Below are positions 19,573-51,524 of a stretch of DNA of 64,000 nucleotides, in pieces. The notes beneath the pieces are model-generated. The model ran no database searches. It had not been told where the DNA came from and was given only the letters and a program-made list of their open reading frames with translations. The DNA is taken from positions 62,001-126,000 of the IMG/VR virus record IMGVR_UViG_3300032236_001613; one strand, given 5' to 3'. The position numbers were made by a program, and so were the translations under genes. How positions within the stretch are numbered: position 1 is the first letter of the stretch; the number at the start of each line of letters is the position of its first letter.

Positions 19573-19715
19573 ATGAGTTTTAGCCTCAGTTTACTATTCT
19601 CTTGCTACCTGATGTAAGTGCTTACAACACTTTTTACTAGTATCACAGGCTACCCGCTTCGAACAAGGTTAGGCTTGTACTTGTACTTGACCCGACGAGC
19701 TGGGCTAAAACTCAT
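19573..19715 (-). ncRNA. Candidate 143-nt rod-shaped ncRNA with its own promoter
   Basis: Perfect 13-bp terminal inverted repeat ATGAGTTTTAGCC; predicted +1 lies 7 nt after TATAAT of TTGACC-17-TATAAT. Confidence 0.6.
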
Positions 19716-19771
19716 AAAACTATTATATGCTAGCACCAGCATAAGGTCAACAATTAACAATAAATACTCCT

Positions 19772-20947
19772 ATGCGCATCCAAGAGCTACTATTAGAATA
19801 CAACCGACAGATTACCCTACAAAAGATAGGCGATCAGCTGACTCAAACAGCAGCTAGAGAACACACTACTGCAGAAGAGGCTATAGCTGCACTGGAAGAA
19901 ATGGATCCAACCGCAAATAAACAGTATACTCCTTGGCTGGCACGACAATACATTAAGCAGCAGTTTAGATTAGAGGACGCAGATAGAATACGCACAGTAC
20001 TAGATAACTTTGGTCAACTTAAATCAAGACTACCTGTTGAACAAAGAGATATAGGACGTATGGATTTTTACCAACTTGATGATTTAATTAATCAAGTATT
20101 AGATGTTAAACTAGAGGTGGATAAGCCTATTGAAGGAGGTACTTTCCCTATAGTTCCTGACTCCCGAGTCTTATACAACGGACCATTAGGGCAATTAGCT
20201 ATACCAGAAACCCGAGAAGCCAGTTGCGAATTAGGTCGTGGTACTGAATGGTGTACGGCTTATACAAAATCAAATAATCAATTTGATAGTTATAATCGAA
20301 GAGGTCCTTTATACGTATGGCGAGACAAAAATGGTGAGAAATATCAATTCCATTTCAGCGGCGGCCTACAAATGATGGATAGTCGAGATCGCCCTATAGA
20401 AAAAGATAAAATAGATTATTTTAGAAAACAGCATCCTGTACTTAAAAAATTGTTTCGACAAATAGAATCTCAAGCGTTAAAAGACCCTATATTAGCAACT
20501 CAGTATGCCGAAAAAGTAATTGGAGGACGTTGGCCCGAAGGCGAGGCCACAATAGCACAAACCTCACAGGCAGCATATTACTACGCTCGAAAAATAATCA
20601 AAAGTCGGTTTCCTGAGGGGGAAGCAGCATTATTAGAACCATCAACTGACATTAATTTTCTAATTTTTTATGCCGAACAAGTAATCAAAGGTCGTTGGCC
20701 TGAAGCTGAAGAAATGATAGCACAAAACCCATCGGCAGCATTTTACTACGCCCGACACATAATCAAAGGTCCTTTTCCTGAGGGGGAAGACGCAATAGCT
20801 CAAGATGACAGGCTCGCTTACAACTATGCTGTAGAAATACTTAAAGATCGTTTCCTAAAAGGAGAAAAGACTCTACAAAAGAGCAATGTTTATTGGTACC
20901 ATTACAAAAAACATTTCGGAATAAAACAACGTAAAGGTAAAACCTAA
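19772..20947 (+). CDS. Putative internal head protein with C-terminal helical repeats; paralog of 23127..24458
   Basis: MRIQELLLE; DPT..K.YT.WL, WCTA..N.F..Y..GP.Y, GEKYQFHF; ~6 repeats of A..YA..IIK.RWPEGE..I. Confidence 0.85.
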   Translation: MRIQELLLEYNRQITLQKIGDQLTQTAAREHTTAEEAIAALEEMDPTANKQYTPWLARQYIKQQFRLEDADRIRTVLDNFGQLKSRLPVEQRDIGRMDFYQLDDLINQVLDVKLEVDKPIEGGTFPIVPDSRVLYNGPLGQLAIPETREASCELGRGTEWCTAYTKSNNQFDSYNRRGPLYVWRDKNGEKYQFHFSGGLQMMDSRDRPIEKDKIDYFRKQHPVLKKLFRQIESQALKDPILATQYAEKVIGGRWPEGEATIAQTSQAAYYYARKIIKSRFPEGEAALLEPSTDINFLIFYAEQVIKGRWPEAEEMIAQNPSAAFYYARHIIKGPFPEGEDAIAQDDRLAYNYAVEILKDRFLKGEKTLQKSNVYWYHYKKHFGIKQRKGKT

Positions 20948-20949
20948 TA

Positions 20950-22125
20950 ATGCGTATCCGAGAACTAATTGATCACTCACACCCTATAGTTTACTTAGAC
21001 ATGGACGGAGTATTGGCAGACTTTGATCACGGTTATCGCGAACTATCTGGGCAAGATCCTAAAGACACATTTATACCTAATCCTAAAGATGATCCTGTGC
21101 TTAGCCGAATGATTGGCACAGATTTCTTTGCTAGATTACCTAAGTACAAGACAGCGGATCGGCTAGTTCAAATGGTGGTGGATCGATTTGGATCTTACTC
21201 TATATGCTCAAGCCCATTACGCGGCGATCATGATAACAGTGAGCACAATAAAAAACAATGGATACAGCAACATCTTAATCCACAACCTGCATCCATAGTT
21301 ATAACTGGTAGAAAAGAAAAATACGCTATACGTAATGGAGTTCCGAACATCTTGATTGACGATAAGTCATCTAATATTGCTAAATGGACTGCTAAAGGTG
21401 GAATAGGCATACTCTATTACGCTCCTAGAGATTCTTTAAATCAAGTGGCTAAAGTTCTTGATCAGTCTTTAAACGAAGAAAAAATCGAGTTCGATCCTGC
21501 TGATCCCGAACATGAAGAACAGTTTCTTAGACCTAAAGAGTTTCGTAAACAGGGCGCATACTCTTATGTAACTCATCATCCTAGTCATGATCCACATATG
21601 GTTCAAAAGACAGATCGTACCGCTTTACCACCTGAACAGAATCCTTTTTATCAATATGCTCGAGCAATTGCTACAGCAGAAAAACGTAACACTAACCCAT
21701 ACTTGCCTAGAGTACGAGTAGTTGATGCCGAAGAAACAGATTGGGGTGGCGTAGTCTTTACTTACGAATGCGAAAGATTACATGACTTTACCGAAGTAGA
21801 ACACCAGTTGGGCGAAGATGTAGTTGTAAACATAGGCAGAAAAATGTTTAATGATTACGACACATTATCACGAAATTACATTAGAGACCACAGAGGTGAT
21901 AACCTCAATGCTTGGGAAGTATTAGCAGGAATATTGCACTTTATGCAAGTAGGACATAAATGGAATTGGGTTAAAGACCCATTATTCAAACAGGCACTAG
22001 ATATTCTAAAGGAAATTGACGAGCAGACTGGTAACTTCTTTCAATGGGATTGGAAGGCAGATAACCTAATGATTAGGTTCACCAGTAAAGGTCCTCAGCT
22101 AGTGCTTACGGATCCGTTAAGTTAA
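20950..22125 (+). CDS. HAD 5'(3')-deoxyribonucleotidase fused to a T7 gp0.7-like protein kinase domain
   Basis: YLDMDGVLADF and LIDDK (HAD); QGAYSYV..K, PYLPRV, WDWKADNLM, LTDP (kinase). Confidence 0.75.
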   Translation: MRIRELIDHSHPIVYLDMDGVLADFDHGYRELSGQDPKDTFIPNPKDDPVLSRMIGTDFFARLPKYKTADRLVQMVVDRFGSYSICSSPLRGDHDNSEHNKKQWIQQHLNPQPASIVITGRKEKYAIRNGVPNILIDDKSSNIAKWTAKGGIGILYYAPRDSLNQVAKVLDQSLNEEKIEFDPADPEHEEQFLRPKEFRKQGAYSYVTHHPSHDPHMVQKTDRTALPPEQNPFYQYARAIATAEKRNTNPYLPRVRVVDAEETDWGGVVFTYECERLHDFTEVEHQLGEDVVVNIGRKMFNDYDTLSRNYIRDHRGDNLNAWEVLAGILHFMQVGHKWNWVKDPLFKQALDILKEIDEQTGNFFQWDWKADNLMIRFTSKGPQLVLTDPLS

Positions 22126-22467: not shown

Positions 22468-23130
22468 ATGCGTGCACAAGAAGTATTTGAATCTTATAGA
22501 TGGAGCTGGTCAGACGATGATGCAGAACAGCTCTCTAGTAAGATCCCACCCAAATATCTAGAAAGATTACGTAATCTCACTGTCCGGGATCGACGAGTTA
22601 GCAACTTTATGGATACCCATAACATTAACTTGGTTCAATTTCTCACAAGATTTCAGGAACAAAAGGGTTTAGATCCAGTAAACAAAACTGAGTTAGCATC
22701 TGATTTTATTGTTAAGATTCCGAAAAATAATCCTGAAGGTTTTTATTTTGCAAATAAATCTAATGAAGTTAGAGCCGGTGCCGAATTAGATATTGCAGAT
22801 CAAGCACATACAGATCTATATCGCGTTTATATGAAGACCAAACTTCGCGCAGAAAAGATAAACACTCCATTTACATTAACATTAAAAGAAGCCGCCGACA
22901 TCTTTAAAGCACAGGGAGGCAAATGTGCATTAACTGGAGAAAAGTTAGGAAAAGGACTAGGATCATCACCCAGTATGGATCAACGAGTTCCTAGAGTGAG
23001 AGGCGGCCCTGGTTATACTAAAGACAATGTACAATGGGTTACCGCACAGATTAACTTTGCTAAACAGAATTTAACTAATGAAGAATTTGCAGATCTTTGT
23101 AAAAAAGTTGCTGCACATTCCGGGAATTAG
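22468..23130 (+). CDS. HNH-like (bba-Me) endonuclease domain protein
   Basis: QGGKCALTG..SPSMDQ..GYTKDNVQWV..IN.AK; N-terminus MRAQEVFE. Confidence 0.7.
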   Translation: MRAQEVFESYRWSWSDDDAEQLSSKIPPKYLERLRNLTVRDRRVSNFMDTHNINLVQFLTRFQEQKGLDPVNKTELASDFIVKIPKNNPEGFYFANKSNEVRAGAELDIADQAHTDLYRVYMKTKLRAEKINTPFTLTLKEAADIFKAQGGKCALTGEKLGKGLGSSPSMDQRVPRVRGGPGYTKDNVQWVTAQINFAKQNLTNEEFADLCKKVAAHSGN

Positions 23131-24458
23131 AGTCTGTACCATTTGTCCTTTAACTTTACTAAAAACCTCGATACAGTTTGATACGCATAATGGCCATCAT
23201 ACTCTGTAGGCCCCGATTCCATGTCCCGAATAAGTTCGTTCACAGTATCTTTGAATTGCCTACGATATGTTAAGTCTGCTTGATCTGCGTTGCCTAAGGT
23301 CTTGATTTCATGCTTTCCTGGACCATCCGTGGGTAGATAATAGCGATCAGCTACAACTACTACAGCAGAAAAATCAGGTGGAAATATGGCATATACAAGT
23401 TGGGATGCTTTTTGTCCACGACTGGGTGCAACTCTGAGTGTTTGTAAAAAAGAACCCATATGTACATTAAAAAGTTCTTCAAAAGGATCAACCAACTCCC
23501 ATTCAAACATACCACTTTCTACTAGAATGCAAGAGTACATGCCATTTTCTAATTGACGAGCTTTCCATTTAAGATATTGTTTTGTATGGTTTAATCCATT
23601 ATAAGATGGCTTACGTGGTGGCTTTAACCAACTTAAACGATATTCTTTAGCTTGGTCTGCAAAGATTTTTGATAGCTCAGGAAACCTTCTAACTAGACTG
23701 CTGCCCCACTCACTAATGTCATTATCATGTTCGTCCATAAACTGGTGGCTAGGAAAATGAAACTGGTATTTTTCCCCAGTATGTACAGGCTGTCTAGGTA
23801 TTATAATATACATAGGACCATCTTGGTTATAGCTGTTAAACATGTTGTTGTTTGTAGCAGCTGTACACCAACGAGTGTTCTGCCCATAAAAGCAAGCTGC
23901 TTCTCGATCATTTGGTTTTATAACAATTAGACGATCATCACGAAATACTTCATCGTAATCGCCGCGGGGTGACTTCTGCTTTTGGTCATCTCTACGACTT
24001 CTGACTGCAGAAAAAGCGTTATATAACGTTCTAAAATTATAAGCGTTAATATCTCTAAGATTAGTTAATCTGCGACGTTTGTAGTCATCAAATTTTTCTA
24101 GAGAATCTGTAATCTCAGTAGCTACATCTTCTGCATGCATCGCGTCCTTACAATAGTTTTTTATTAACCATTGAGTGTATTCTTTATGTGGGGTGGGATC
24201 CATTAATTCAAAAATATTTACTAAGATTTTTTTAGACTCAGCTTCGATTGCATGGCGAGGATTATCATAGTCGTTGTGTTCGTCATAGGCCATACATAAA
24301 ATACTGTACCCTCTTTCACTAAGTAGGTCAGCAGATTTTAGACGTTGTATGTGATTATAACTTTCCAATTCAAAGAAATGTTTATACAACTTATCACCAT
24401 AATTCTTAACGGTGATTTCATGATTATATTCGACAAGGAACAGTTCGTTGAGTAACAT
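23127..24458 (-). CDS. Putative internal head protein; paralog of 19772..20947
   Basis: MLLNELFLVE; DPTPHKEYTQWL, WCTAATNNNMFNSYNQDGPMY, GEKYQFHF. Confidence 0.85.
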   Translation of the reverse strand: MLLNELFLVEYNHEITVKNYGDKLYKHFFELESYNHIQRLKSADLLSERGYSILCMAYDEHNDYDNPRHAIEAESKKILVNIFELMDPTPHKEYTQWLIKNYCKDAMHAEDVATEITDSLEKFDDYKRRRLTNLRDINAYNFRTLYNAFSAVRSRRDDQKQKSPRGDYDEVFRDDRLIVIKPNDREAACFYGQNTRWCTAATNNNMFNSYNQDGPMYIIIPRQPVHTGEKYQFHFPSHQFMDEHDNDISEWGSSLVRRFPELSKIFADQAKEYRLSWLKPPRKPSYNGLNHTKQYLKWKARQLENGMYSCILVESGMFEWELVDPFEELFNVHMGSFLQTLRVAPSRGQKASQLVYAIFPPDFSAVVVVADRYYLPTDGPGKHEIKTLGNADQADLTYRRQFKDTVNELIRDMESGPTEYDGHYAYQTVSRFLVKLKDKWYRL

Positions 24459-24460
24459 TA

Positions 24461-24871
24461 TTAGGCCTGATCTGCATCCATCACATCACAAGTAAGTGGC
24501 CAAGGTCCACGATGCGGCGGGCGTTGCATTGCTTTATAATGATCATAATTGGTATTGGCTGCAGCATGATTTTCGATGTTACTTGCTACTGTTTCGGCAA
24601 TGTCTCTATTGCTGTAACTAGCAACTGGTGCCCACCCTTGCCCGTGTGCTTGATGTACACGGCGTGCAGCTTCCCCAGGGCTTAATCTAGTACCTGCTAC
24701 TACAGCTTCGACTACTACTTCAAATGGTGTAACTGCATCATTTAGGATTACTACTGTAAATCCTCCAGGGACGTATAGTGGTACTTCTTGTCTTTGACGA
24801 ACTGTTGGACGATCAACTACTGTATCATCGTCAGTATCTACTGGTGCTTCAACTAATTCTTGTATACGCAT
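24461..24871 (-). CDS. clpS: ATP-dependent Clp protease adaptor ClpS
   Basis: VVILNDAVTPFEVVV, EA.RRVHQAH.QG, AET, PLTC motifs of the ClpS fold. Confidence 0.8.
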   Translation of the reverse strand: MRIQELVEAPVDTDDDTVVDRPTVRQRQEVPLYVPGGFTVVILNDAVTPFEVVVEAVVAGTRLSPGEAARRVHQAHGQGWAPVASYSNRDIAETVASNIENHAAANTNYDHYKAMQRPPHRGPWPLTCDVMDADQA

Positions 24872-27457: not shown

Positions 27458-28012
27458 ATGTATAACTTTATAAAATATGTCACTGAAGGCCGCAAAGAAC
27501 GACTAGAACAAGTTACGCTACCCTATGATCGTAATGATTTAGGTAATAGCCTAAGCAAAGATACGCTAGATTTACACTACGGTAAACTTTACAAAGCATA
27601 TGTAGATAGATATAATAAAGGTGAAGGTGACGATGATTTTAACGAAGCTGGTGCTTTCCTACATGCTATATACTTCACACAGTTCCGTTCACTAACTAGC
27701 AATAATCAACCTACAGAGCAAAGTTTAGAATTTGTTGAACAACATTTTAAATCATTTGAAAACTTTAAGAAAGAATTCTTAAAAACTGCTATGGGCATAC
27801 AAGGAGCAGGATGGGTTTACTTAGCCCGTAATGGCGAGCTTAAAACAATTAAGAATCACGAAATTAGAAAAGACATTGTACTATTGATTGATTGGTGGGA
27901 ACATTCGTTTCTGATTGACTTCGGTAGTGACAAAGAGAAATACCTAGAAGGCCAATGGCGCATTATTGATTGGACAAAAATAAACTATCTCTTGACAGGT
28001 ATGTCTAAGTAA
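27458..28012 (+). CDS. sod: Fe/Mn superoxide dismutase
   Basis: Metal ligands LH(YGK), FLH, DWWEH; L..LPY..; G.GW..L. Confidence 0.9.
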   Translation: MYNFIKYVTEGRKERLEQVTLPYDRNDLGNSLSKDTLDLHYGKLYKAYVDRYNKGEGDDDFNEAGAFLHAIYFTQFRSLTSNNQPTEQSLEFVEQHFKSFENFKKEFLKTAMGIQGAGWVYLARNGELKTIKNHEIRKDIVLLIDWWEHSFLIDFGSDKEKYLEGQWRIIDWTKINYLLTGMSK

Positions 28013-28038
28013 AGTATATTACTATACGAGGTAAGAAT

Positions 28039-28374
28039 ATGAAAAAGTTACTTTTAATTCTAGCACTAACAATTCCGTTTGCTACAGCTCACGCCGATCC
28101 TGAACATCATCACGATCGTGATCATCACGAATGGCACGAACGCGGCGGTCATTTTGGCTGGGGTGAATTCGTTGGCGGAATAATCTTAGGTGGCATCATT
28201 GCACATGAAGTAAATGGTCATTACTATGACAACGACGAAGACGAAGTTCGCCGCGTATCTGTATGTAACGATTATCCTGTAGTTGATCAATGGGGACACT
28301 ACGTCTTTGATAATCAGGGACATATGATAATTGAACGTCGTTGCCACGATGAATGGATAAGGGTAAATCGATGA
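28039..28374 (+). CDS. Exported His-rich protein
   Basis: Signal peptide MKKLLLILAL..AHA; GGIILGGII. Confidence 0.75.
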   Translation: MKKLLLILALTIPFATAHADPEHHHDRDHHEWHERGGHFGWGEFVGGIILGGIIAHEVNGHYYDNDEDEVRRVSVCNDYPVVDQWGHYVFDNQGHMIIERRCHDEWIRVNR

Positions 28375-28703
28375 TAACTGTATCTGCTGCTGCTGCAAAA
28401 CGCATTTGGGAAATACTAGAAGAGGAAGGCAATACTGACTTTGCTTTTAGAATTTCTGTAATCGGCGGCGGATGCTCAGGCTTTAAGTATAACTTTTCTA
28501 TTATTGACCCAAAATGGGTTAATTTCGACGACTATCATGTAATTGAAACTAACGGAATAAAGTTAGTAATAGACACAATGAGTATGGAATACCTAGATGG
28601 ATCCACAGTAGATTTTATTAAACGTTTGTTCAGCAGCGAATTTAAAATAAACAATCCTAAAGCTAAACAAAAATGCGGCTGTGGAAATAGTTTCGGCGCA
28701 TGA
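28371..28703 (+). CDS. Iron-sulfur cluster carrier, HesB/IscA/ErpA family
   Basis: GGGCSGFKY and CGCGNSF; start at 28371 (ATGA overlap). Confidence 0.92.
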   Translation: MITVSAAAAKRIWEILEEEGNTDFAFRISVIGGGCSGFKYNFSIIDPKWVNFDDYHVIETNGIKLVIDTMSMEYLDGSTVDFIKRLFSSEFKINNPKAKQKCGCGNSFGA

Positions 28704-28945
28704 AAAAGTATCGTAGGATAGCATCTTGGACTTTGCGTATTAGTCCTAAAAAAGAATACTGTTTTGATGATCTAGGCGAAGTTGTATTATCGCCTAACGT
28801 AGGAACTACATACTTACATTGGTACTCCGTTAAAGGCAATTTAACCGCTACTGCTACATTAGATGAACACATGATAGTGTCCACTCCGGTGAGAGTAGTT
28901 AATAATTCCGAAGATATTACTTTGGTCAACGTCATTGAAATTTAA
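28700..28945 (+). CDS. Hypothetical protein
   Basis: ATGA overlap. Confidence 0.6.
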   Translation: MKKYRRIASWTLRISPKKEYCFDDLGEVVLSPNVGTTYLHWYSVKGNLTATATLDEHMIVSTPVRVVNNSEDITLVNVIEI

Positions 28946-29013
28946 ATTGGTTGACTCTGTTGGTAATTCCATGTATATTAGTACTTTAATTTAATACACA
29001 GGTACTATACTAT

Positions 29014-30321
29014 ATGCATCACATTATTCAAGAACTTGCTGCAGACAATAGCCGCCTAGCTAAGGAAGCTATCCTTAAGCGTGAAGCCAACGCTGGTAAC
29101 GAAGAATTCTTCGAAGGTTGCCGTCTTGCGTTGGATAACCTTATGTCATTTGGTGTTAAGAAGGTTCCTACTTATTCTGGTCCAGATGGGCAAGGATTGC
29201 CGTGGGCTGCATTTACACAACTAGCAAATAGTCTTTATCGACGAGAGCTTACTGGGCATGCTGCCCGTGACGCTATTGAACTAGCAATGAGTGCTAGCAC
29301 CAAGGATCAGTGGAATCACTGGTACCGATTGATTTTGTTAAAAGATCTCAAGTGTGGCGTTAGTGAAAAGACCATTAACAAAGTACTTAAGAATACTAAG
29401 ATTAAGCCTGTGCCAGGATTCTCCTGTATGTTAGCTCACGACGGTGCTAATCATGAAAAGAAAATTGCAGGTAAGAAGTTACTTGAACCTAAGCTTGACG
29501 GTGTGCGTGTACTCACTGTTATTAATACAGTTAATCGCACCGTAACACAATACACTAGAAATGGTAAGATCCTAGAAAACTTTTCGCATATTACACAAGC
29601 TATCGAAGAACATATCGACCAGTTTGGACGTAGCTGTGTCCTTGACGGTGAAATGATTAGTACTAGCTTTCAGGCTCTTATGAAGCAGGTTCATCGCAAG
29701 GAAAATGTACAAGCAGATGATGCTGTGCTAATGTTGTTTGACATTATTCCTCTAACTGAATTCCAACTGGGTAAGAGTGCATTAGGGCAGCGTCGACGTA
29801 GCAATTTGCTTAAATCTTTTAAACCAGTGTTTGACCAAATTGGTAACATTGGTGTTATTCCGCAAACTGAAGTGGACCTTGATAGTTATGTAGGCGAGCT
29901 GCAGTTTAAAGAATTTAACAAAGAAGCTATTGATAATGGCTATGAAGGAATAATGATAAAAGACGTCGACGGAGTTTACGAATGTAAGCGTTCTGTCAAA
30001 TGGCTTAAGCAAAAACCTTATATTGAAGTAAGTCTTGCTGTAGTTGGCCTTGAGGAAGGCACTGGCAAGAATGAAGGACGCTTGGGTGCACTTATCTGTG
30101 AAGGCGAGGACGACGGGAAGCACATTCGAGTTAACGTTGGTAGTGGATTTACTGATGAACAGCGTCGAGAATTTTGGGAAGAACAAGACATCATGATTGA
30201 TCAAGTTGTAGAAATTCGTGCAGATGCTGCTACACTTAATCAAGATAGCGACAACATCTATAGTTTGCGTTTTCCAAGATTTCTACGGTTCCGTGGATTT
30301 AGCGTAGGAGAAAAAATCTAA
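29014..30321 (+). CDS. lig: ATP-dependent DNA ligase
   Basis: EPKLDGVR (motif I), LDGEM, FDI, EGIMIK, WLKQK, C-terminal OB fold SLRFPRF. Confidence 0.95.
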   Translation: MHHIIQELAADNSRLAKEAILKREANAGNEEFFEGCRLALDNLMSFGVKKVPTYSGPDGQGLPWAAFTQLANSLYRRELTGHAARDAIELAMSASTKDQWNHWYRLILLKDLKCGVSEKTINKVLKNTKIKPVPGFSCMLAHDGANHEKKIAGKKLLEPKLDGVRVLTVINTVNRTVTQYTRNGKILENFSHITQAIEEHIDQFGRSCVLDGEMISTSFQALMKQVHRKENVQADDAVLMLFDIIPLTEFQLGKSALGQRRRSNLLKSFKPVFDQIGNIGVIPQTEVDLDSYVGELQFKEFNKEAIDNGYEGIMIKDVDGVYECKRSVKWLKQKPYIEVSLAVVGLEEGTGKNEGRLGALICEGEDDGKHIRVNVGSGFTDEQRREFWEEQDIMIDQVVEIRADAATLNQDSDNIYSLRFPRFLRFRGFSVGEKI

Positions 30322-49100: not shown

Positions 49101-51524
49101 GGTTACTTGTATGTGGATGCAGGTAACTTAAGTATTGGTACAGACACTCCAGGCAAGGGTTTACAATTCTTTACCGAAGGTACAATGTCTGAAAACATTG
49201 TGGCTACTATTACTACTGGTAGTTTAAATGTCAACAACATTAATACACTTAATAGTTCAACACTATCTCTTAACTTAGCAAATAATGGTAGTGTTAGTGT
49301 TAATACCATAAACATCCCCGTTGGAACTATTTTAGGTAGTACCACTGCTACGATATATACATTGGCCAGTTTAACATTAACTAATGTTATTGCGCATAGT
49401 ACATTGACTACAGACACATTATCTGCAGGACAGTATGGATTATTAAATGGTATTGCTGCTCCATATGCTGTTTATGAATTTACACAAACTCCTACACCTG
49501 CTCTACAAGTAGGCGACATACTAAGTGGTGCGGGCATACCTAACATATTACCTGGAGGTGTTATAGGATATACCGGTACTGTGGTATTAGCAGTCTGCAC
49601 CGGAACATATAGTAATTTGATTGTAGGCTATAGTGATTATAGTTATAGTGCAATTAGTTTACCTGCACCGGGTGTTTCAGTCTTAGTAGGACGCAATACA
49701 CTAAATGCCAATCTAGCTGTCACTACTCCGCCTATTACAGACGTTGGATTATTCCCGGGAGTTGCTGGAAACATTATTGCGGGACGCAATATATTACCAT
49801 TAGTTAATGATACCTACGACTTAGGGTCGCCTGCTATGCGGTGGCGTCATATATGGTTTGGTGCTGGTACAATTTATATCTTGGACGAAACATTAGGTAC
49901 CGACACTGCTATCGGTGCTAAAGATGGACTAGTATACTTACAAGGCGGTGTAGGATTAACTGTAGGTGAATTTACATTAGTTGACAACCAAATTAAAATT
50001 GCCAATCCCGCTCGTGATATCTTAGTAGGTACAACTACTGCCACAGGCAGTGTTATATTCAATCGTCCGATTAGAGTTAATGCTCCTGCTGGCAATACCG
50101 CATTTGTTGTGGATAGATTGGGTTTAACCACTATCAATCCCCCAATATCATTATCAAATACACAGTCAGCATTAAGTATTATTGGTAATGCTAGTGGTAT
50201 ACAACAGCCTCGTAACTTTAACAATACTATGTTACAAATTACAGGAGCAGATAGTACTGCTACTCGTATAAGTTTGGATGCATTTGGTACAGGATCGTAT
50301 CCTGTTATTGCTGGTAGACAAGCTGGCGGTACCGTTACTGCTCCTACTCAAACTAAGAACGGCGATACACTATTACGGTTTAGTTCTCAAGGATGGGGTA
50401 CTACTGGGTATGTTACTACAATCGGCCGCATTAATGTGCAGGCTGTGCAGGATTTTACTGACACTGCTGCAGGTACTAGAATACGTTTTCAAGTAACTCC
50501 TGTAAACACAAACAGTATACAAACTGTTACAGCAGATATTACTGCTACAGGATTAAGTTTAGTTGGTAACTCTATCGGTGGAATCACCTTTAGAGATAAT
50601 ACATTCCAGTATACAGCGTTTACAACATCAAGTGCTGTAACTAGCATTCGTGCAGGAACTGGCACACACGTTAGTTCCACAACCGGCGATGTTACTGTTT
50701 GGGTAGATTTATTAAGCGGCCCTACAGGTTACACAGGTAGTGTTGGTTATACTGGAAGTATCGGATATACTGGATCAAAAGGTTATACTGGCAGTATTGG
50801 CTATACTGGCAGTATTGGTTACACAGGCAGTATTGGCTATATTGGCAGTATTGGCTATATTGGCAGTATTGGCTATATTGGCAGTATTGGTTCAATCGGA
50901 TATACAGGAAGTGTTGGTTATACTGGTTCAATCGGATATACAGGAAGTGTTGGTTATACTGGTTCAATCGGATATACAGGAAGTGTTGGTTATACTGGTA
51001 GTGTTGGCTATACTGGTAGCATAGGTTATACTGGTTCTGCTAGCACAGTGCAGGGCCCACAAGGTTACGTTGGTAGCATAGGATATACAGGTAGTTTTCC
51101 CGGGTCATATGTCAGTAGTATCACAGCAGGTACAGGCACAGCAGTATCAACATCAACAGGTGCTGTTACAGTCTGGGCAATACCGCAGGCAATTACTAGC
51201 ACCGGAACTACATCAGCTACTAACATCACAGTAAACCTATCTGGTCCAACTTTTGTATATTGGCAACCCACAGCTAATGGCAATAGAACTATAACACTAA
51301 CTGGATTTTCGCCTGGTAGAAAAATTGAAATGTTTATTACCCCTCATACTGTTAATGACATTTTTACAGTAAGCGGAGTTACTACTAGTCAATGCAGTAA
51401 CGGTAAAAATACTTTTACAATGAATGGAGTCGGAGCATCGCAACAAAACAGTTTTATGCTACAGATTTATTGTACCACTAATGCAATAGGCGGTGTTTGG
51501 ATTTATGGCAATGGTAGTTTGTAA
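46101..51524 (+). CDS. Long collagen-like tail fibre (1807 aa)
   Basis: Repeated GT.WWN..DGNLY..YQ.TWVDA..ATTSTLGGVKIG.GI modules separated by G-X-Y tracts. Confidence 0.85.
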   Translation: MAYTQDFFTSRRNYGDGTTRIGEVGRLWYDPITNTIRVSDGVTPGGIIVTGGGGGGGTTTIVSGTAPGVQPTGTLWWNTTDGNLYVSYQGTWVDASAQYVLAAATTSTLGGVKIGAGITVAPDGTISVTGVSGNGYTGSQGATGYIGSAGVDGINGYTGSAGIDGVNGYVGSTGYTGSSSAAIVSDTNPGTEATGTFWWNTIDGNLYINYQNTWVDAVAQYVLSTATTSTLGGVKIGSGISITADGTISVTGGAGNGYTGSAGINGISGYTGSAGVDGVAGYTGSTGYTGSSSAAIVSDTNPGPESTGTFWWNTIDGNLYINYQNTWVDAVAQYVLSTATTSTLGGVKIGSGISITSDGTISVIGGVGNGYTGSAGTNGTSGYIGSAGVAGYIGSAGIGYVGSSGIDGINGYTGSAGIDGTLGYVGSIGYVGSVGTVIVSDTAPVSESTGTLWWNSIDGNLYVEYQGTWVDAVSQFVLTTATTSTLGGVKIGSGISITGDGTISVIGAIGYVGSAGIDGITGYTGSQGNIGYYGSKGYTGSVGYIGSKGYTGSKGYTGSQGDIGYVGSQGNIGYVGSAGIDGYIGSQGDIGYVGSAGIDGYIGSQGDIGYIGSAGIDGYIGSQGDIGYVGSAGIDGYVGSQGDIGYVGSAGIDGYIGSQGDIGYVGSAGIDGYIGSQGDIGYVGSIGYFGSIGYNGSKGYTGSIGYVGSIGYVGSIGYSGSAGSFNPIISDTPITYNTSQLWWNSIDGNLYIGFENYWVPAVQTTIGPQGLIGYIGSRGIQGPIGPNIPASASQLGSVIIGNNINVDVNGVISIPQNVNTSATVIFDQLTVNNLSVLGTFTNVIPAEILGYRLYLASSATNTSTINNGGIQLGSTTTGIRSLLWNYNNGNDYWYTDTTTGFQTEHLVAGYSILNSLQVTNKANFGFVNLSLTYTNAVIQIDSYGDNYTQVILQNHSSGTNASGDFIVTNDAGNDAMHYIDLGINSSNYNTSTWTVNGPDDGYLYVDAGNLSIGTDTPGKGLQFFTEGTMSENIVATITTGSLNVNNINTLNSSTLSLNLANNGSVSVNTINIPVGTILGSTTATIYTLASLTLTNVIAHSTLTTDTLSAGQYGLLNGIAAPYAVYEFTQTPTPALQVGDILSGAGIPNILPGGVIGYTGTVVLAVCTGTYSNLIVGYSDYSYSAISLPAPGVSVLVGRNTLNANLAVTTPPITDVGLFPGVAGNIIAGRNILPLVNDTYDLGSPAMRWRHIWFGAGTIYILDETLGTDTAIGAKDGLVYLQGGVGLTVGEFTLVDNQIKIANPARDILVGTTTATGSVIFNRPIRVNAPAGNTAFVVDRLGLTTINPPISLSNTQSALSIIGNASGIQQPRNFNNTMLQITGADSTATRISLDAFGTGSYPVIAGRQAGGTVTAPTQTKNGDTLLRFSSQGWGTTGYVTTIGRINVQAVQDFTDTAAGTRIRFQVTPVNTNSIQTVTADITATGLSLVGNSIGGITFRDNTFQYTAFTTSSAVTSIRAGTGTHVSSTTGDVTVWVDLLSGPTGYTGSVGYTGSIGYTGSKGYTGSIGYTGSIGYTGSIGYIGSIGYIGSIGYIGSIGSIGYTGSVGYTGSIGYTGSVGYTGSIGYTGSVGYTGSVGYTGSIGYTGSASTVQGPQGYVGSIGYTGSFPGSYVSSITAGTGTAVSTSTGAVTVWAIPQAITSTGTTSATNITVNLSGPTFVYWQPTANGNRTITLTGFSPGRKIEMFITPHTVNDIFTVSGVTTSQCSNGKNTFTMNGVGASQQNSFMLQIYCTTNAIGGVWIYGNGSL

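Follow-up and report, generated by a model that had tools for sequence, protein, structure and literature searches.

We analysed a 64,000-nt stretch of DNA (hereafter the window) that corresponds to bases 62001–126000 of the 328,068-bp virus record IMGVR_UViG_3300032236_001613 (G000; estimated to be 92% complete), which originates from freshwater metagenomes. The subject of this work is one open reading frame (ORF) of the window, at positions 20950–22125, in which a short N-terminal tag, a NT5C-type nucleotidase domain of the HAD superfamily, an acidic linker and a minimal kinase domain resembling that of phage T7 gp0.7 (T7K) follow one another in a single predicted protein.

The genome encodes a T4-type (gp23) major capsid protein (PF07068, 265 bits), a gp21-type prohead protease (PF03420, 88.9 bits) and a homologue of the T4 late sigma factor gp55 (E 1.3e-8). 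The capsid protein is 67–71% identical to those of Rak2/GAP32/CBB-like jumbo myoviruses and of Vibrio phage 2.275.O. Judged by these genes, the source is a freshwater jumbo phage with a T4-type capsid, Rak2/GAP32-like. A megablast search of isolated phages returned no match to the locus.

The features of the locus are as follows (aa, amino acids; pLDDT, predicted local distance difference test):

20950–22125, forward strand: whole ORF with tag, NT5C domain, linker and kinase domain (391 aa plus stop)
20950–20976, forward strand: N-terminal tag MRIRELIDH (aa 1–9), with I-R-E at aa 3–5 and Asp where other tags have a second Glu
20977–21465, forward strand: NT5C-type HAD 5'(3')-deoxyribonucleotidase domain (aa 10–172), assigned by Pfam, PHROG and motif alignment
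21466–21531, forward strand: acidic flexible linker (aa 173–194, SLNEEKIEFDPADPEHEEQFLR), with the candidate protease site L174-N-E176 and low pLDDT
21532–22122, forward strand: T7 gp0.7 (T7K)-like minimal protein kinase domain (aa 195–391), with G202, K220, E275, D367-x-K-x-x-N372 and D388-P389-L390-S391
20968–21475, forward strand: NT5C indel segment of 508 nt, absent from a related phage variant (run X4, record 22)
19760–19766, forward strand: ATAAATA, a late-promoter motif of T4 type that lies 5 nt before the start codon (ATG) of gene 19772 and heads a two-gene operon in which the fusion gene is second

The reading frame contains neither an internal stop nor a frameshift and begins 2 nt after the stop codon of the preceding gene. 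A Logan contig of run X1 covers the whole ORF with 0 differences; X1 is the probable source sample of the window, so this contig is not fully independent. A second NT5C–kinase fusion of 396 aa (P0152), found in other samples and representing 20 member sequences, is 77% identical over its full length. Taken together, the X1 contig and P0152 make an assembly chimera unlikely. A start at M18, used in one database gene call (P0002), was rejected: it would delete the HAD nucleophile Asp17, and since the tag is conserved in P0152, M1 is taken as the true start.

Nucleotidase and kinase domains

The N-terminal half was matched by Pfam PF06941 over aa 12–159 (E 5.7e-8, 33.3 bits against a cut-off of 24.8) and by phrog_2643 (5'-3' deoxyribonucleotidase; E 3.1e-22). 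HAD motif I (D17-M-D19-G-V), motif II (S87/S88 in ICSSPL) and motif IV (D137-D138 in LIDDK) are all intact, and alignment with the human cdN structures 4l57 and 2i7d revealed conservation of DMDGVLADF, ICSSPL and LIDDK. From its sequence, the domain looks catalytically intact. Stand-alone NT5C relatives with 56–62% identity are abundant in phage metagenomes, and the nearest one among isolates belongs to Methylophilales phage Melnitz (48%). The domain shares HAD motifs I, II and IV and the signature DMDGVLADF with human cdN/mdN and the phage phrog_2643 proteins, and differs from these members of the NT5C family in forming the tagged N-terminal half of a kinase fusion; its substrate class is predicted.

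For the C-terminal half, an exhaustive search recovered 382 relatives, nearly all of them stand-alone proteins of 200–250 aa, and 124 of these made up the family profile and alignment. Compared with aa 66–224 of T7 gp0.7, the profile reached an hhalign probability of 97.3% (E 2.5e-11). The gp0.7 PHROG (phrog_15752) was matched individually by 86 of the 124 members (best 9.3e-18) and a Ser/Thr kinase PHROG by 23. Pfam searches with the C-terminal half alone or with all family members yielded only scattered sub-threshold ABC1, YrbL and Pkinase_fungal matches, and a profile search of PDB sequences returned nothing but spurious helical designs. Among isolates, tblastn located the kinase half only in the Stenotrophomonas phages RAS14 and CM1.

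Structure prediction with AlphaFold2 (AF2) on the full protein as a single sequence was useless (pLDDT 36); with the family alignment, the model reached a pLDDT of 90.2. In a Foldseek comparison of this model with PDB and Swiss-Prot, the leading matches were Ser/Thr protein kinases, with FN3K and APH turning up among the weak fold matches, and a search of BFVD returned phage protein kinases, T7-like ones among them. VIA, an aligner independent of Foldseek, listed 50 matches, nearly all of which were kinases or kinase-fold chains (Z 5.3–7.4); the truncated effector kinases OspG and HopBF1 were among those listed.

Conservation within the family follows the catalytic residues. The glycine-loop residue G202 is kept in 121 of the 124 relatives, the K220 column holds Lys in 110 and Arg in 12, catalytic D367 is kept in 123 and N372 in all 124, while D388 is invariant (124/124) and P389 nearly so (120/124). 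The stretch N249-P-Y-L-P253-R-V and M374 also fall in family-conserved columns, and the hinge residue E275 belongs to the conserved catalytic set. A Ser after the DP[L/I/V] motif, present here, occurs in a minority of relatives (23/124). The protein ends at S391, 3 residues past the DFG-equivalent Asp D388; the domain has no activation loop, nor the portion of the C-lobe that binds substrate, and the C-terminal shut-off/DNA-binding domain of T7K is not present. The assignment to the T7 gp0.7-like kinases is well supported, with activity and substrate class predicted from sequence and model, and by the same reckoning the kinase looks catalytically intact, if minimal.

A 2026 study showed that T7K disarms bacterial defences through mass phosphorylation early in infection and gave the DPV-S216 motif in place of DFG as the hallmark of its homologues; it also reported homologues from jumbophages (Salmonella phage Munch, Escherichia phage G17) that lack the shut-off domain, and left them uncharacterised (PMC13645617). 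The focal kinase shares with T7K and the jumbophage homologues a homologous core, comprising G202 (equivalent to G76 of T7K), the Lys, D-x-[KH]-x-x-N and DP[V/L]-Ser instead of DFG, and with the jumbophage proteins the missing shut-off domain. In contrast to T7K, it ends 3 residues after the DFG-equivalent Asp without a C-terminal DNA-binding shut-off domain, it lies behind a NT5C nucleotidase and carries a T4-like N-terminal tag, and its operon has a promoter that appears to be of late type, whereas T7 0.7 is an early (class I) gene. OspG/NleH of Shigella/E. coli and HopBF1 resemble it in a truncated fold that stops near the DFG equivalent (structural match Z 5.5), but there is no detectable sequence relationship, and they act in eukaryotic cells, as type III effectors of bacteria.

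Most of the initial annotation, which had been drawn from the letters alone, agrees with these results. The NT5C-type HAD domain that it described lies above the PF06941 cut-off, matches phrog_2643 and aligns in its motifs to human cdN. The motifs that it listed for a T7 gp0.7-like kinase are all present, in columns conserved across the 124 relatives and with profile and fold support, and the structure prediction that it proposed as a check gave a kinase fold for the C-terminal domain in the AF2 model described above. The acidic linker SLNEEKIE was located at aa 173–180, where model confidence is low (pLDDT 49–65), and an N-terminal tag (MRIRELI) does exist, matches to its pattern being far above chance in the genome. 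Its ideas of virion delivery and of a protease cut in the linker are plausible, as set out below. Two of its functional proposals fared differently. NT5C enzymes act on deoxynucleoside monophosphates (dNMPs), not on phosphoproteins, so the suggested pairing of a phospho-writer with an eraser has no support, and nothing in the analysis argues for action against nucleotide-signalling defences.

Tag, late promoter and origin of the fusion

A search with the pattern M[KRLQ][ILVAFM]x[ED][LIVFM][LIVFMT] gave 24 matches in the genome, where ~2.6 would be expected from all Met residues; ~20 of the matches lie at ORF starts. About 20 unrelated proteins of the phage carry the tag, a portable peptide of ~9 aa with the form M-[RK]-[IL]-x-E-[LI]-[LI]. 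The tag is also found on 122 of 148 kinase relatives and on 60 of 116 NT5C relatives; the remaining NT5C relatives start directly with MKKPEVYLDMDG, which marks the tag as a detachable extension. Its codons vary synonymously (Arg as CGT, CGC or AGA; Leu as CTG, TTA or CTA), indicating constraint on the peptide. A cause at the mRNA level, such as a need of leaderless translation, was considered and rejected given this codon variation, the presence of the tag on operon-internal genes and its absence from 13 leaderless structural genes. Most tags of the genome have a second Glu at position 8–10 with L/I/F at position -3 relative to it.

Comparable N-termini are found in the T4 record: MKTYQEFIAE in IPII/III, MELITELFDE in Alt, MAKINELLRE in gp24 and MLLIPETHELVLE in gp68. 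That of IPII/III is the experimentally defined T4 capsid-targeting sequence (CTS), which is cleaved by the prohead protease (PMC8442874; PMC3012670). The likeness to the T4 CTS and gp21-cleaved N-termini (IPI–III, Alt, gp24, gp68) extends from the form M-x-x-x-E-[LF]-[LIF]-x-E and its L/I-x-E sites to diverse, fast-swapping cargo genes behind late TATAAATA-type promoters, and to a gp21-type protease and gp23 capsid in the same genome. The tag here is one residue shorter, with Asp at the second acidic position of the focal copy, and it is found on ~20 proteins, enzymes of 80–440 aa included.

ATAAATA is a described late promoter in the related phages CBB and GAP32 (PMC5259590). In the genome studied here, it lies 4–8 nt (mode 5) upstream of the ATG in 27 ORFs, while the heptamer is under-represented overall (78 seen, ~198 expected). 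About half of these 27 ORFs are tagged genes, and the others encode tail fibres, a head–tail adaptor and virion structural proteins; 13 leaderless late structural genes have no tag. The spacing between ATAAATA and the ATG is too short for a Shine–Dalgarno sequence, and other genes use AAGGAG. From this we infer that the late mRNAs are leaderless. The fusion gene, second in an operon headed by the motif, is probably a late gene; the locus did not turn up in any RNA run. The promoter–tag arrangement is kept on kinase genes of relatives that are only 40% identical. It is also kept, with a longer leader, by the kinase gene of RAS14, whose genome has only a weak enrichment of the ATAAATA–ATG arrangement; the RAS14/CM1 kinase begins with MKLIDLFED and follows ATAAATA. 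Scanning the locus for promoters and terminators yielded nothing further.

The same region is also shared at the DNA level. A 92-nt promoter region and the first 21 nt (MRIQELL) of gene 19772 are near-identical to those of stand-alone kinase genes, and the homology ends after the tag:

19680–19795 of the window, compared with L011:3910–4025 and L014:430–545: near-identical promoter and first 7 codons, before different genes (DNA comparison)

Because homology stops right after the tag, promoter and tag-coding sequence together look like a recombination joint for the swapping of cargo cassettes.

Comparison with related phages points to how the fusion arose. In a contig of run X4, from another lake metagenome, window position 20967 is joined to 21476 via 16 other bases, giving MRIREL-LTEEEK-EKIEFDP. 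Two stand-alone kinases, P0153 (93% identity to the focal kinase half) and P0154 (88%), have the N-termini MRIQELL(K/T)EE(E)KEIIGFEPADPE, in which the tag is joined directly to the kinase. DNA homology to stand-alone kinase genes begins in the linker region (21466–21531). The syntenic contig L011, from a related phage, has the kinase as a separate gene, and homology to the window starts just past the tag codons. The direct tag–kinase joint in the X4 contig, P0153 and P0154 show the fusion to be a recent in-frame indel that placed the NT5C module (~aa 7–175) between tag and kinase. The same kinase is also fused to an unrelated HAD domain (P0145) and to a P-loop AAA_33/zeta kinase (P0104). Since the closest kinase relatives lack NT5C, the two halves need not be functionally linked.

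The linker may be a point of separation. The ORF contains 5 L/I-x-E sites against 3.1 expected, which is not significant. L174-N-E176 is one of only two such sites in flexible sequence, and it sits where the tag of the stand-alone kinases has its L-x-E site. This match, together with the low-confidence and presumably flexible sequence around it, makes cleavage by the prohead protease at the linker plausible.

Other tagged genes and further features of the window

Positions refer to the window unless G000 is given:

19772–20947, forward strand: upstream tagged gene (391 aa, MRIQELLLE...) with a WCTA...KYQFHF core and C-terminal repeats (phrog_28193, phrog_17056)
23127–24458, reverse strand: tagged paralogue of gene 19772, with the shared core ...[EN/TR]WCTA...YN..GP[LM]Y...KYQFHF
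24461–24871, reverse strand: tagged ClpS-like adaptor (PF02617, E 2.5e-10)
22468–23130, forward strand: tagged protein behind TATAAATA, with a C-terminal EndoVII/HNH-like domain (phrog_1035, 2.5e-17)
G000 49175–49972, reverse strand: tagged ORF with a weak PARP/ART-like N-terminus (LYHGTT)
G000 125779–127059 (window 63779 onward), forward strand: tagged 426-aa protein with a GH19 muralytic domain
G000 306046–306291, forward strand: tagged 81-aa ORF between portal and prohead protease, the position of T4 gp67; homologue of CBB gp253
22455, 25294, 26292 (reverse strand), 27149, 18910 (reverse strand) and 63768: further ATAAATA–ATG sites (motif scan)
27458–30321: Fe/Mn superoxide dismutase, HesB-like Fe-S biogenesis and ATP-dependent DNA ligase genes, syntenic with L011 (Pfam labels of the L011 homologues)
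31644–63050, forward strand: long series of very large ORFs (the largest 2445 aa), with tail-fibre-like N-termini at its start

Gene 19772 and its paralogue at 23127–24458 had no Pfam match; the former has four or five C-terminal repeats of ~36 aa (xRWPEGExxIAQ). The protein at 22468–23130 gave weak matches to PHROGs named Srd anti-sigma and sigma70 decoy. The tagged ClpS gene adjoins the fusion gene in the P0152 contig as well. Cleavage of the tags behind Glu5 would leave Leu or Phe at the N-terminus of most tagged proteins, and ClpS recognises these residues as N-degrons, although this is purely speculative. Long antisense ORFs in 31644–63050 suggest a repetitive, collagen-like coding sequence.

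Proposed role and competing explanations

The interpretation that we favour, with about an even chance of being right, is that of a late bifunctional nucleotidase–kinase whose tag works like the CTS or gp21-cleaved propeptides of T4, so that the protein is packaged and ejected with the DNA. By analogy with T4, the protein would be made late and drawn into the prohead core by its tag, where a gp21-type protease would trim it at I-R-E(5) and/or L-N-E(176). A cut at E176 would release a mature kinase of the same form as the one encoded on its own. Once ejected into the host with the DNA, the kinase would act on host proteins ahead of all phage gene expression, phosphorylating them as T7K does defence and nucleic-acid-binding proteins. 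Hydrolysis of dNMPs by the NT5C moiety would take place in a cell late in infection or in one newly infected. Virion delivery of the fusion protein is plausible in view of the T4-like tag, the gp21-type protease, gp23 capsid protein and gp55 of the genome, and the ATAAATA late promoter shared with structural genes. Among the other tagged cargo are kinds known to be injected, namely the ART-like protein (compare T4 Alt) and the GH19 muralytic enzyme.

Several observations weigh against this interpretation. A benefit of packaging a dNMP nucleotidase is not evident. The focal tag has Asp instead of the second Glu (L-I-D, not L-x-E), which makes cleavage at the T4-like position doubtful. T7 gp0.7 starts with MNITDIM and fits the tag pattern, yet it is not packaged, so the tag may in part go back to an ancestral kinase N-terminus. 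The related isolate CBB, for which proteomics has been published, has neither the kinase family nor the leaderless ATAAATA-N4-6-ATG arrangement. For the kinase itself, the domain of the window matched the gp0.7 PHROG with only E 0.04, and template modelling (TM) scores to solved kinases are low (0.3–0.38); the low TM-scores and the VIA Z values of no more than 7.4 are attributed to truncation right after the DFG equivalent and to a divergent helical insert. A complex prediction of the prohead protease with aa 1–200 scored 0.00, which is neither support nor counter-evidence.

The same two-domain enzyme could instead be a cytoplasmic late protein, with a kinase that acts late in infection and a tag that is not a packaging signal and serves stability, binding of a common partner or as an N-degron with the phage's tagged ClpS homologue, or is a mere recombination joint. 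We regard this as rather unlikely, while granting several points in its favour: the missing second Glu of the focal tag, the similar N-terminus of unpackaged T7 gp0.7, the tagged ClpS homologue 2.3 kb away, the GH19 enzyme, which could be an ordinary late endolysin, and the behaviour of promoter and tag as a cassette joint. It has to account, however, for the closeness of the tag to T4 N-termini known to be prohead-targeted or gp21-cleaved and for a small tagged protein in a head-core gene position beside the protease. Moreover, the 13 untagged leaderless structural genes indicate that the tag is not needed for late expression, and a T7K-like kinase would be most useful at the onset of infection (PMC13645617).

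A different concern is the nature of the second domain, which might be a small-molecule or nucleic-acid-end kinase sharing a pathway with the HAD phosphatase, through nucleotide pool remodelling or Pnkp-like end-healing, rather than a protein kinase. The kinase-like fold does host small-molecule kinases, as the weak FN3K and APH matches illustrate; the domain here lacks an activation loop and the substrate-binding portion of a C-lobe; the kinase is fused to other partners in P0145 (unrelated HAD) and P0104 (P-loop AAA_33/zeta kinase); and T4 Pnkp provides a precedent for a kinase joined to a HAD phosphatase. We nevertheless consider it improbable, as the domain is homologous to T7K in particular, which is a proven protein kinase, and the structural matches listed are nearly all protein kinases, the best ones without exception. 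The same truncation occurs in the minimal protein kinases OspG and HopBF1, and the family is mostly stand-alone, its closest members lacking a HAD domain, so the two activities are not obligatorily coupled. Least credible of all is an artefact of assembly or annotation that merged two genes, or a dead pseudokinase, to which we assign only a very slight chance. Very close relatives do have stand-alone kinase genes, and the P0002 gene call begins at M18; against this stand the X1 contig, identical across the ORF though probably from the same sample, the 77%-identical P0152 fusion in other samples with its 20 member sequences, a frame with neither stop nor frameshift, and the retention of all catalytic residues in both domains.

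The proposed packaging of the nucleotidase–kinase can also be placed in a wider and more tentative picture, which we hold to be possible, with somewhat less than even probability. A clade of freshwater jumbo phages with T4-type capsids would load ~20 swappable cargo enzymes, among them a T7K-like kinase, an ART-like protein, ClpS, a nuclease and a muralytic enzyme, by means of the tag M-[RK]-[IL]-x-E-[LI]-[LI]-x-E borne on leaderless late transcripts; the kinase, split off at the linker by the prohead protease, would arrive ready-made as a promiscuous enzyme and disarm host defences ahead of phage gene expression, and the promoter–tag region would be the recombination joint.

As for the fusion with NT5C, it is a small variation, and the two activities may not be functionally coupled. 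If the proposed packaging holds, a T7K-type weapon would be deployed in a different manner: made late, fitted with a tag like that of T4 internal proteins and probably injected, it would act without a lag. The locus thus offers a candidate capsid-targeting tag outside the T-even phages, with ~20 natural cargo proteins, and its natural indels show how cargo domains get swapped, which is relevant to phage counter-defence and to protein-packaging applications.

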